Shown here: positions 5,662-20,022 of the stretch, piece after piece | How positions within the stretch are numbered: position 1 is the first letter of the stretch | Layout of the letters: each line of letters begins with the position of its first letter | From: Octopus sinensis | Taxonomy: Eukaryota | Direction of reading: 5' to 3' | NCBI RefSeq assembly: GCF_006345805.1 | Contig: NC_043008.1 | Location: 38,068,001-38,132,000, forward strand | Length of the DNA: 64,000 nt | Position numbers and translations under genes: made by a program | The notes under the pieces: model-generated | The model's input: the letters and a program-made list of their open reading frames with translations, nothing else | Told to the model about the DNA's origin: nothing | Database searches by the model: none

Positions 5662-5943
5662 CATATGGGGGAATCACGTCTACTTTAAAGCGTTTGATTT
5701 CTTTGTTGCCTTCTTCACAAATATAAAGTCCCGTGTCACTATAGTTACTCTTCAGTACTGTGAAGACACTGATTAGAGTTTTTGTAACTCTAGGTCGATA
5801 GTTTGTAATGTAAACTTTTTTACTGACATCAGTACTTAAAGGTTTGCCTTGTTTGAACCACAATATATCGTCAGGAGGTTCCGTCTTTCTTGTAATGTTA
5901 CATATCAGCTTCACAGGATCCTCAAGCCTGACACGCACTATGT
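5662..5943 (-). CDS. Internal Ig-domain exon B, paralogous to exon A
   Basis: Acceptor caatttttttattgcag|AC (AG at 5945-5944). Translation (D)IVRVRLEDPVKLICNITRKTEPPDDILWFKQGKPLSTDVSKKVYITNYRPRVTKTLISVFTVLKSNYSDTGLYICEEGNKEIKRFKVDVIPPY has L-I-C, W-F-K-x-G, D-T-G-L-Y-I-C, and NIT and NYS sequons. Perfect donor TAT G|gtaagt at 5661; 282 nt, phase 1-1. 36 identities over about 94 aa to exon A by hand alignment. Confidence 0.9.
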
Positions 5944-7404
5944 CTGCAATAAAAAAATTGAATACAATAGCAATGGCATTGTTCCTGGAAGTTATACATG
6001 ATATGAAAGAATAATGATCTTCATGTGACAAAATTTTTGTTGTTGAACTTAAATGGAAATTATTGACGAGAGCAGAACAGCAGTCATCATTGCCTGTGAT
6101 CAACAAACATTTATCTAATATTATAGGCAATTTCCTGGTGTTGCCTTATTTTTTGTTTTTATTGTTACAGAAATTTTTTGTTACAGAAATTTTCAGTAAT
6201 TACTCTAAATTATAAAATATTTTGTTGTTGTAACTAGCAATTTTTTTCTAATGCTTAATATTTGAAGATAATTCAAAATAATAATTTTACTTAATTTACT
6301 ATAAATAGGTCTATCAAGAACAGAGTTTGAGTTAAAATTAAAATTCTATATTTAAAAATATTAAATATAATATACAAAAAAATTTTTTTTTGTATTTTTG
6401 TGTCAACAATATTTATTACATTTTATTAACCAATGAAATATATCAAAATTTTCAATCTAGTTGCCACTAAATCAAGCTATTATTATTATTATTATTTTGG
6501 CAAATATAAATACACACACATATATATATATGTTGCTACAATCTATGGACAGATCTATACTCACATCACATCAAATGTATCACTAAATTTATTAGTCCAG
6601 AGACGATAATCTAATAAACATTTTTCTTTCTCTAAATATCTTATATTTCAAAGCGACAAAAATCATTTGCATTTATTTCACAAAATATATTTCCAAAGTA
6701 GTACAACATTAATAAACTAAAGAATCACAAAAGCAATGACAAAATTCAACAGCAACGTAGGCATGCTTTATCAAAGAAACAAAAACAAAAAAAAAGATGA
6801 TGCATCAGTCGAGTAAAAATTTTATATCAACCATTTTTGTTGCTTGGATGTTTTTACAGAAAGAAAAAATCTATGTTAGATATAGCCTGTGTATAAGAAA
6901 ATGTCTTGGTAGTATGACCAATAGAACGAATCTTGGTCCCTTGTCTAGTATATTTTATATAATTGCATTGATTTCCATCTATGGTTATTTTTACTGAGGC
7001 ACAGCCATAAAAGTCAAGTGTATAGATTTTCTATAATGATGATGGCTAAAAAAATTAAATAAATAAATAACAAAGTTGTAATGCAGAATAATGTAAAGTT
7101 AAGTTAGAAGTGAGGGTCTAAAGTGAGCTATTTCTAACACACTATCAGAGTCATCAAAATAGAGATTAAATAATAAAAGGTTAAAGATTTATTGTCATGT
7201 TTACTATTTATAGAGAAACATAAAAAGCTTGCTTATTTTGGCATATAAGCACTGCGACCACTCACCACACAATAGTCTATAGAGTAGATAAAAGCAATAG
7301 GAATAAAAAATAATACCAAATGAGGTTTCCAGTTGCTATGAATAGTTTTAGGGGTTCACATTCAAAACTGTAGATCAGTTAGTTGTGAATAGGTACAACT
7401 GTCT

Positions 7405-7710
7405 ACATATATATAAATAAATACATAATATATATATATATATATATATATATATATATATATATATATATATGTGTGTGTGTGTGTGTGTGTATATATA
7501 TGTATGTATATATATGTTTATATATATGTATATATATATATATATATATATATATATATATAGATAGATAGATAGATAGATAGATAGATAGATAAGTATA
7601 CATATATGTATGTATGCACACACACATATATACATATACTTATATATGTATAAACATATAATTATATATGAATATGTGTGTGCATATATACATACACACA
7701 TACACTCATA
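7405..7710. repeat. Compound (TA)n/(TG)n/(TAGA)n microsatellite
   Basis: Directly visible. Confidence 0.95.
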
Positions 7711-9828
7711 TAACTGGTTCCAAATTTGAAAACGAAGATATGTGGTTAAATAAATGGCTGGTTTTTATAAATGTATTTTTTATTTTACTCTCTTTCATGT
7801 GGGAATTTGTAGGCAGTGATTTGGTTGAAATCATGCCTGATAGAATACTGGGTTGGGGGAAGAAGATTTATTTATGTGTGTAGATGCTGGAAGTGATTTT
7901 TGAAGACAGTTGTATTTGTTACACACAACCATGAAACTTTGGCAGTTAAAAGTTGTTAACTTTCCTTCTATGAACGAAATACTGCTGATGTAATCATACA
8001 ATTTTATCTGAGTCATAGTGCTTCTAGGTAGAAGTCTTGGGAAAACAGGAGTCAAAAGTAAACCGATCTTTTTTTTTTTTTTTTGAGAAATGGTAATGTG
8101 CCAAACTAAATGCTTACAGCGCATAGTTATGAACTTTTACACTCTAAGTTCCAATCCTGGTGGGGGTTAACCTCGCCTCTAATCCCTCCAAGCTTAGTAA
8201 ACAAAATGGCAATAGTATTGATTCACTACTTCATTACCTAAAAGTTTGTGGTTTATGTCAAGGTTGAAAACTATTATTATTATTATTATTATTTGATAGA
8301 ATTGTTGCAGCTCTAAAAAAGAAAAGATGCCTTACAGTGCTTCTTTGAAATCTTTACATTCTGGGTTCAAAACCCAATGAGGTCATTTTTACATTTCGTC
8401 CTTCCAGGGTCAATAAAACAAAGCACTTAGTTAATAAACTAAGGATGATGGTATCAACTAACACCTTCCCTCCCAACTACAACTTACAACATTTTGGGAT
8501 CGATGAAAGAAGTACCAGTTGAGCAGTAGTGTTGATGCAATCAACTAGCCCCTTCCCAAATATTTCAGACTTAGTGCCTGTAGTAGAAAGTATTGTTGTT
8601 GTTGTTGTTGTTATTATTATTATTATTATTATCGCCTGACTGGTAAATTAATAATAATAATAATAATAATAATAATAATAATAATATAATAATAATAATA
8701 ATAATGATAGTTGTTAAACTACATGATAGGCTAAGTCTAATGCCCAAGTAAGTTACAGTGAGATTTGATCTTAGAACACAAAGTGTTGGAATAAATACCA
8801 TAAGGCATTTGTTCTGATGTTCTTGCCAGTCTGTCAGTCCACTACCTTAATTGCTAGTTTTGACATAGTTGCCCACACATGTGTGCAACAAACATATTTT
8901 CTTTCCGAAATAAGAAATACAAAACTAAAGAGATTAACTTCAGATTCTGTGATGATCAGAATTGTTGATCAAAATGCGCAGTTAATAAGTATTTTTATGA
9001 CAACTGGTTATTGATTACTGCTTAATAGTTTTCAAATATATAATTTTCACTTGGTTACATATAATTTTTGGGCCCAATCAACCATAGTACTTATATATTT
9101 TGCATTGTTGCTGCTTGAACTTTGAAAATGTTAGATTCATGGCAAGGATATGCTTATATTTCTTCTAAGTTTTTATTATCTGGTTGACAGATAACCAGAG
9201 CCAAGCAGTAACTACATCTGTATTTACTAAATAGTAAAAGAACTAGAAGCTAGTTTATGAGCTTTTATGGACTTGCCTGACTCTACATCAATGATATTTT
9301 GATCTTTTTAAAATAAAGACCATATCTTTTAATTTTGTAAATTTTCAGACTCTGTATATGTCAATAAATTTGTAAAAGGACACATGAATAAAATCCTCTG
9401 GTTTCCTGGGTATGAGGAGTTGAGACATGGATTTTCAAGTTTTGTAGATCATCAGAAGTGATGATTTACCTGAGTGTATCATAGGTAACTTTCCCAATGA
9501 ATCCAATATCCAGCTAAGTAAATAAGTGACATTAAGTTTAATAGAAAAATTCTGCTGAGGTGTTAGTGACACCATCATCATCACTGTCATGAACACCAGT
9601 TTGATAATAATAGTCTTTTTTACTGAACACAAAGGCTGTAGATTACAGAAGATGAAACAAGATGTTTTGACATTCATACTTTTCTACTGGAACATTAAGT
9701 ATTACTGCCTATTTTTTGTTGTAATGTTCTTATCACTTATTTAATATTTATGTGAAACAAAAAAGAACTGAATTTTACTTTTAATTTACCAAATAAACTA
9801 CTTGTATTCTTGTTTCTAATAAAATGTT

Positions 9829-19505: not shown

Positions 19506-19611
19506 TCAAAATAACACAAACAATTCAGAATATATTTTAACAAACCAATAACATAAAATGGTTTTAAAGCATTCCACTAAAACAATATTCCATGCAGAAG
19601 AACTCATTTCA
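19506..19611 (-). CDS. Candidate terminal exon encoding a hydrophobic, GPI-signal-like C-terminus
   Basis: Long polypyrimidine tract ctttatttctctgtctctttccctcacataaacacttactcacag| lies about 120 nt downstream of exon A. With the phase-2 donor at 19733 it reads (T)EMSSSAWNIVLVECFKTILCYWFVKIYSELFVLF*; with the phase-1 donor it reads VK*. No transcript evidence. Confidence 0.3.
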
Positions 19612-19728
19612 CTGTGAGTAAGTGTTTATGTGAGGGAAAGAGACAGAGAAATAAAGATTGTTAGACAAGAGTTTTGATAACAGTAACATGTGCAACGCAT
19701 TCAAATAGAGGGAGACTAAATTACTAAC

Positions 19729-20022
19729 CATACGTATTTAAAACATTCACTTTAAATCGAGTGACTTCCAGGTCAGATGTTCGGCACACATAGATGCCGT
19801 CATCTCCAGTGTTACTCCGTGCTATTTTTAGCTCACTGATAAGAGTTCTTGGAGAGACTTGACGTCGAGTTATTATAACTCTTCGTAAGACGCCCCTCGT
19901 AATGATTTCTCCGTCCTTGTACCATGTGATGTCCCGAGGAGACTGTACACTGTTGGTAGCATTACAGATCAAGTGGATGGGTTCTGTGTTCTGAACATAG
20001 GCTGTGCCTGTAAGAGTTATAT
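19729..20022 (-). CDS. Internal Ig-domain exon A of a Dpr/zig-8-like cell-surface Ig protein
   Basis: Acceptor tttgttgtttgcag|AT (AG at 20024-20023). Translation (D)ITLTGTAYVQNTEPIHLICNATNSVQSPRDITWYKDGEIITRGVLRRVIITRRQVSPRTLISELKIARSNTGDDGIYVCRTSDLEVTRFKVNVLNTY has the Ig hallmarks L-x-C, W-Y-K-D-G, D-x-G-x-Y-x-C and an NAT sequon. Donor TAT G|gttagt at 19728; 294 nt, phase 1-1. The family label comes from remembered similarity to molluscan zig-8/dpr-like second Ig domains, not from a search. Confidence 0.92.

Follow-up and report, generated by a model that had tools for sequence, protein, structure and literature searches.

The window analysed here, a 64-kb stretch of Octopus sinensis DNA (contig NC_043008.1, positions 38,068,001 to 38,132,000), carries on its minus strand part of what is, by sequence similarity, a Dpr-like gene of the immunoglobulin (Ig) superfamily. 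Three exons of this gene lie within it: exons A and B, which each encode an Ig domain, and the linker microexon L (Table 1). An earlier note on this DNA had described A and B as two same-strand, phase 1-1 Ig exons some 13.8 kb apart, about 38% identical, both starting with D-I and ending with RFKVxV-xxY-G. Our analysis agrees: the two peptides share 38-40% identity (BLASTP, 72 bits, E 4e-23), the D-I start, the RFKVxVxxxY-G end and the canonical Cys...Trp...DxGxYxC pattern, and each passes the Pfam Ig_3 gathering score. With a slash marking the exon border, exon A runs from the acceptor ...gttgtttgcag/AT to the donor TATG/gttagt and exon B from the acceptor ...tttattgcag/AC to the donor TATG/gtaagt. 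The borders of both exons were verified to the single base by cDNA contigs of a related species; the note had the frame of exon B right, the one small reservation being that its position 5944 belongs to the acceptor AG, as the final G. Microexon L, with flanks ttttcag/ATTCAACATCATCCACCCATTCAG/gtagga, lies 19 kb upstream of exon A, beyond the coordinates given in the note, and was located by a six-frame search with the linker peptide DSTSSTHS of the octopus homologues P0002/P0010. An (ATT)n microsatellite begins about 30 nucleotides (nt) past its donor.

Logan RNA-seq contigs revealed how these exons are joined. Two of the runs are Sepia esculenta larval RNA-seq (PMC10442824, PMC9538352), and the contigs of the remaining runs are identical or 98.6-99.9% identical to the S. 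esculenta ones. Contigs reading Ig1-L-A-B-tail were present in five Sepia runs (L011-L015) and contigs reading Ig1-L-B-tail in six (L003-L008); comparison of the A-included with the A-skipped form (L012 vs L003) gave a difference of exactly 294 nt, with the reading frame kept. In cDNA, L joins A as TCACTCAG/ATATAACG, A joins B as CCTATG/ACATAGTT, and L joins B directly as TCACTCAG/ACATAGTT. The A-B junction peptide ...VLNTY/DIVRVR... is found in the five S. esculenta runs and in gene models of O. sinensis (XP_036363767/69/70, isoforms X1-X3) and O. bimaculoides (XP_052828063/64, isoforms X1-X2). The A-skipped form is also modelled, in O. bimaculoides (XP_052828065, X3) and in O. vulgaris (CAI9731002). 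No B-less isoform of this gene occurs among the 15 sequences in the five recovered clusters. The main mRNA is Ig1-L-A-B-stalk/tail, in which A and B are consecutive exons and are normally both included; exon A is an optional cassette removed by ordinary exon skipping, and exon B appears constitutive. Optional linker and stalk microexons are visible among the RefSeq isoforms.

Table 1. Features of the window (position 1 is its first letter).
Feature	Position	Strand	Description
Exon A	19729..20022	-	294 nt, phase 1-1, one whole Ig domain; ancestral Ig2; cassette exon
Exon B	5662..5943	-	282 nt, phase 1-1, one whole Ig domain; extra membrane-proximal Ig3, Ig2 type
Linker microexon L	39257..39280	-	24 nt, phase 1-1, DSTSSTHS; between Ig1 exon(s) and exon A
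Intron L-A	20023..39256	-	19.2 kb, between mapped exon borders; no Dpr-type Ig exon
Intron A-B	5944..19728	-	13,785 nt; interspersed repeats and LINE-like ORF remnant; no Ig exon
Conserved intronic block	19540..19625	-	just downstream of exon A; blastn match in Argonauta; contains UGCAUG
UGCAUG in conserved block	19591-19596	-	133 nt past the exon A donor
ORF in A-B intron	12570-13049	-	160 codons
SINE-like repeat copies	222-317, 28143-28239, 33625-33739, 39865-39931, 53807-53892, 57129-57241		repeat of about 130 nt
Low-complexity tract	~63000-63690		long trinucleotide tract (CAT/CAC/TCT-type)

Three-Ig models of this gene are already present in RefSeq and GenBank, under names that are inconsistent and misleading: hemicentin-2, protein sidekick-1, Down syndrome cell adhesion molecule (DSCAM) and zig-8. 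The layout Ig1-linker-A-B-tail is read by the O. sinensis and O. bimaculoides models that contain the A-B junction and by the older O. bimaculoides XP_014774723, and the A and B segments of these models are identical to the window. In XP_036363769, the Ig2 is identical to the exon A peptide and the B segment is 100% identical to the exon B peptide. The B segment is likewise 100% identical between the window and the two A-skipped models, CAI9731002 ('hemicentin-2 X2') and XP_052828065 ('zig-8 X3'). CAI9731002 is the only O. vulgaris model recovered; it skips exon A, of which the window carries an intact copy. In Argonauta hians, model GAB1605941 has the order L-A-B-tail, and the counterpart of microexon L lies at 9996-10019 of the 98.8-kb Argonauta locus (L002), whose ends are L and the tail exon. 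Octopus models X1 and X2 have long N-termini with no obvious signal peptide, unlike the Sepia cDNA product. Two readings of the models were abandoned. A query with A+B gave seven hits and no Octopus three-Ig model, as if exon A had never been annotated; a full-length construct as query recovered the three-Ig models. The Argonauta 'isoform X1' had been considered as an Ig1-less protein, but its model starts at an ATG within microexon L, which has an upstream acceptor, and is therefore 5'-truncated. In the literature collection searched, no description of a cephalopod Dpr architecture was found.

The orthologous gene in O. vulgaris spans about 290 kb; the window is therefore an internal piece of the gene, with Ig1, the optional microexons and the tail exon outside it. 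Searches by tblastn with all homologues found no Ig1, second linker microexon (DSSSPNADSS), stalk microexon (DDKTFPLSP) or tail exon in the window, and tblastn with both peptides and all homologues found no third A/B-like copy there. A profile hidden Markov model (HMM) built from 140 two-Ig relatives was run with filters off on the six-frame open reading frames (ORFs) of the window and of the Argonauta locus. In the window it matched exon A at profile positions 150-248 (E 9e-36) and exon B at 153-246 (E 2e-29), both in the Ig2 part. No match besides A and B, and no Ig1-type exon, was obtained in the window or in the Argonauta locus. This confirms the note, which could find no first-Ig or signal exon between A and B. 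Of the further paralogous cassettes that it had suggested looking for by tblastn in the flanking megabase and in other cephalopod genomes, none was detected in the window or in the Argonauta locus between L and the tail exon.

It is improbable that the protein is constitutively three-Ig and that the A-skipped transcripts are functionless splicing noise or annotation artefacts. The L-B junction was assembled independently in each of the six Sepia runs, in contigs about as numerous as those of the A-included form, and it is not a mis-join of the 31-mer assembly graph because the starts of A and B share few bases only. Exon A may simply have been missed in the O. vulgaris model, which is a prediction, but the A-skipped form is also in RefSeq for O. 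bimaculoides; taken with the Sepia contigs, this model indicates that skipping recurs in both coleoid superorders. Stochastic skipping is possible for a symmetric exon with a weak donor; against noise, the skipping is in frame and adjoins a conserved intronic block.

Less likely still is the Dscam-like mutually exclusive splicing that the note had offered as its second option, in which every mRNA would have one second Ig domain, encoded by A in some transcripts and by B in others. The A-B junction in cDNA already largely refutes it. Co-inclusion of A and B is the commonest arrangement in the RefSeq models of two Octopus species (six models) and is found in five Sepia runs, and every one of the 15 sequences for this gene contains B. 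There are only two such exons in the window, and only two from L to tail in the 98.8-kb Argonauta locus; the 13.8-kb A-B intron provides no steric exclusion. These points outweigh the paralogy, common phase and similar length of A and B, and also the existence of Ig1-L-B transcripts, which simple skipping of A explains instead. A contig of the paralogue described below (P0034/L016) skips its B' and keeps its A'. With A skipped here, it follows that for each of the two Ig2-type exons the family offers a case of omission. A pair of independent tandem genes, both two-Ig and contributing one exon each, can be dismissed as next to impossible: Dpr-like genes are expanded in molluscs (PMC6525511) and a true paralogue lies elsewhere on the same chromosome-scale contig, but the restriction of HMM matches to A and B excludes both tandem genes and a larger cassette array, no Ig1 exon was found in the window with the A-B interval included, the direct joining of A to B in cDNAs already refutes the idea, and the paralogue, which has an A' and a B' of its own, is another locus.

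By similarity ranking, the gene belongs with the Dprs among the Wirins (Dpr/DIP/IgLON), a family of small neuronal adhesion proteins in the Ig superfamily, in line with the Dpr/zig-8-like identity proposed in the note. A phmmer search of PDB with Ig1+A as the query placed Dpr4 (9.5e-23) and Dpr2 (6.1e-21) on top, with both domains covered. Weaker matches were DIP-alpha (2e-10; DIPs around 1e-10), neurotrimin (3e-9; IgLONs around 3e-9) and the Ig1 of ZIG-8 (7e-6). The AlphaFold model of the Sepia three-Ig protein consists of three confident beta-sandwich domains and a disordered stalk (mean predicted local distance difference test score, pLDDT, 79.7). Foldseek searches with this model returned Dpr2 and Dpr4 Ig1-Ig2 as the best matches, then DIP Ig1-3, and the modelled Ig1 superposes on the Ig1 of Dpr10 and Dpr6 with a root-mean-square deviation of 1.1 Å and 34-39% identity. 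Pfam identifies three Ig stretches in the main isoform product. The Sepia cDNA product begins with an N-terminal hydrophobic helix and has a disordered stalk at residues 339-381, with a C-terminal hydrophobic helix at 379-399 after SSAS. Such a hydrophobic C-terminus is typical of a glycosylphosphatidylinositol (GPI)-anchor signal, and the protein may be GPI-anchored.

The Wirin family comprises Dprs, DIPs, IgLONs, ZIG-8 and RIG-5, with Dprs and DIPs expanded in arthropods and molluscs (PMC6525511), and the insect Dprs and ZIG-8 are all described as two-Ig proteins (PMC10084454). The main octopus isoform departs from the Dpr definition of exactly two Ig domains by having three, and only the A-skipped isoform has two. 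Nor does its third domain correspond to the third Ig of DIPs, IgLONs and Lachesin, as B maps to Ig2 profile positions. Three tandem Ig domains with a putative membrane anchor are a feature that it does share with the three-Ig Wirins, as an architectural resemblance only.

To place B in evolution, we searched 1.84 billion representative proteins by HMMER with the three-Ig protein as the query. The best 150 matches are mostly proteins of about 300 amino acids that cover the Ig1+A part of the query alone (about residues 86-302); the cephalopod paralogue is the one other match that extends over both A and B. Among the longer matches inspected, no Ig1-A-B protein from outside the cephalopods was found. 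By inspection of sequences and names, two-Ig relatives occur in Haliotis, Pecten, Liolophura, Nucella, Littorina, Mya, Solemya and others, and in the alignment B is a cephalopod-restricted insertion between Ig2 and the conserved 'NVKR' stalk motif. Among the 60 matches listed for a B profile against structures, the sole Wirin match is Dpr2 Ig2, and DIP or IgLON Ig3 is absent. The lineage-specific three-Ig form with A spliced to B, the first of the options raised in the note, is thus the one that stands, with the junction present in models and Sepia contigs and with only Ig1 and an A-like Ig2 in the closest non-cephalopod relatives. The label of membrane-proximal cassette, given there to both exons, fits B but not A, which is the ancestral Ig2.

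The paralogue is a coleoid gene with the layout Ig1-L'-A'-B'-tail, for which Sepia transcripts exist. It is annotated as 'hemicentin-1' in O. sinensis, 'unc-89' in O. bimaculoides and Argonauta, and 'protogenin-like' in O. vulgaris. Identity is 49-58% between A and A' and 39-47% between B and B', compared with 35-40% between A and B in the pairwise set; to the Ig2 of non-cephalopod proteins it is 35-45% for A and 23-35% for B. In a neighbour-joining tree of Ig2-type domains, A groups with A' and B with B' in two clades. This grouping indicates that the extra domain is older than the gene duplication and that both events predate the Sepia-Octopus split. B most probably arose by tandem duplication of the gene's own Ig2 exon, before coleoid divergence and before the gene duplication.

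The paralogue has splice variants of its own. In contig P0034/L016 (SRR7548197), B' is skipped exactly, giving Ig1-A'-tail. Two contigs (proteins P0003 and P0035; L001, SRR8281669, belongs to this group) begin with a different first exon, which brings a signal peptide of its own, and read on into A'-B'-tail, without Ig1. P0003 had been considered as an orthologue without Ig1 and was rejected, being an alternative-first-exon transcript of the paralogous gene; tblastn with its N-terminus found no such first exon in the window. Internal Ig duplications also occur in other spiralian Dpr-like models. The nemertean Tubulanus polymorphus XP_074649850 (P0041), with at least five isoforms, is made up of nine domains in the order Ig1-Ig2-Ig1-Ig2-Ig2-Ig2-Ig1-Ig2-Ig2, and Babylonia areolata XP_0764651xx (P0045 cluster, isoforms X1-X8) and Mercenaria XP_045213492 (P0051) read Ig1-Ig1-Ig2. 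Genuine choice between cassettes may be more readily found in these multi-Ig models, unless they represent fusions of tandem genes.

The sequence around exon A is consistent with regulated skipping. Its donor is GTTAGT in both Octopus and Argonauta, a weak site with a non-consensus T at +3; the donor of exon B is the strong GTAAGT, and that of A' in a Sepia-like genomic contig is GTGAGT. Being symmetric and having a weak donor, exon A can serve as an optional cassette. Exon A has the features of a cassette exon: transcripts with and without it that keep the frame, a suboptimal donor and a conserved flanking intron. The conserved intronic block lies 105-258 nt downstream of A and is 77% identical over 159 nt to Argonauta L002 20812-20967, in collinear position (blastn); the rest of the intron around it is unalignable with Argonauta. 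The block contains UGCAUG, the Rbfox-type motif. This block may act as a splicing-regulatory element for exon A and might in this way help control the inclusion of the exon.

Taking the evidence together, we consider it very probable that the window holds an internal part of a lineage-specific three-Ig Dpr-like gene, in which A is the ancestral Ig2 and optional and B is a second Ig2-type domain. Several points weigh against this interpretation or narrow it. The RNA-seq evidence is from Sepia esculenta and not from the species of the window, and for O. vulgaris and Argonauta the entries come from gene prediction, the Argonauta one being truncated at its 5' end. In the neighbour-joining tree A and B do not come out as sisters, the branch of B is long, and exon A is the nearest non-B domain to B by a narrow margin (distance 0.59 vs 0.61 for Haliotis Ig2). 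For this reason, the origin of B from the gene's own Ig2 rests mainly on position, phase and the shared end motifs. Nautilus is outside the sampling, so that 'coleoid' gives a minimum age for the extra domain. The GPI anchor is read from sequence. Finally, UGCAUG is frequent on the minus strand of the window, with 41 copies, and for this reason only its conservation downstream of A is suggestive.

Skipping of A joins L to B and yields a two-Ig protein, Ig1-B, in which recognition domain and putative anchor are unaltered. Ig1 of Dprs bears the binding surface, and one Ig domain measures about 4 nm by our own estimate. Changing the number of Ig domains from three to two or back, in combination with the optional microexons of linker and stalk, might tune the distance between Ig1 and the membrane and hence the balance of trans and cis binding; the reach of Ig1 would change and its specificity would not. 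Cis inhibition in flies is governed by how long the tether is that connects the membrane-proximal Ig to the GPI site (PMC12135937). A wider scenario, which we put forward tentatively and hold to be possible but unlikely as a whole, is that coleoids rebuilt a three-Ig receptor from a two-Ig Dpr, and that domain-level splicing (skipping of A; in the paralogue, skipping of B' and the Ig1-less first exon; the microexons) regulates ectodomain length and with it trans versus cis binding, under Rbfox-type neuronal control of A through UGCAUG. Dprs are textbook wiring receptors with two Ig domains. Against this background, the gene and its paralogue, a conserved coleoid pair of Dpr-like genes, are a small, concrete case of cephalopods altering the neuronal adhesion toolkit: a third Ig was regained, most probably by internal exon duplication, and exon skipping toggles the number between two and three. 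They also provide a natural test of the fly DIP/Dpr idea that the distance from Ig1 to the membrane controls cis versus trans binding.

The ORF in the A-B intron (...RWPEHISNMELWQRT...RRRGRLKNSWQRS...) has no Pfam match and resembles the C-terminal tail of an RTE/CR1-type long interspersed nuclear element (LINE) ORF2. A short interspersed nuclear element (SINE)-like repeat is common to the window and to Argonauta, where it has many sites in L002; identity among the copies is 75-86%, and a (TA)/(CA) microsatellite usually stands in front of them. ARAGORN found no tRNA-like structure in the window, and Rfam and tRNA scans of the window gave no matches. The low-complexity tract near the end of the window produces spurious open frames of 140-190 codons on both strands.

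Among known systems, the octopus gene is closest to the Drosophila Dprs (Dpr2, Dpr4, Dpr6 and Dpr10) and C. elegans ZIG-8. Ig1+A aligns with Dpr4 and Dpr2 over both domains, Ig1 superposes on that of Dpr10 and Dpr6, and the A-skipped isoform has two Ig domains as the Dprs do. The short stalk and hydrophobic C-terminus also resemble those of GPI-anchored Dprs (PMC10863630). Unlike Dprs and ZIG-8, the main octopus isoform adds a third Ig, B, as a second Ig2-type copy, and domain number is switched by splicing. Mollusc two-Ig proteins, such as the Haliotis 'zig-8-like', Littorina 'OBCAM-like' and Mya 'lachesin-like' entries, share with it the Ig1, an Ig2 similar to A in which the CRTSDL/VLN motifs occur, the 'NVKR' stalk motif and the hydrophobic tail; in contrast to the octopus protein they lack B, and the stalk follows Ig2 directly.

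With its three Ig domains in a row, stalk and GPI-type tail, the main octopus isoform also looks like the DIPs, RIG-5, IgLONs and Lachesin, and Foldseek aligns all three of its domains to Ig1-3 of DIP-alpha, DIP-theta and DIP-eta. However, its similarity to DIPs and IgLONs is about 12 orders of magnitude weaker than that to Dprs. Since B fits the Dpr-like Ig2 profile, with no DIP or IgLON Ig3 among the matches listed, the three-Ig state appears to be convergent, reached by internal duplication and not inherited. Dscam1-type clusters resemble the gene in having duplicated same-phase Ig exons in a neuronal recognition gene. Unlike those arrays, it has two copies that are normally co-included, one of them merely optional, and since skipping of A leaves Ig1 as it is, the domain through which Dprs bind, it would bring no combinatorial diversity in recognition. 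What this gene provides is thus not Dscam-like recognition diversity but a Dpr-type protein with either two or three Ig domains.

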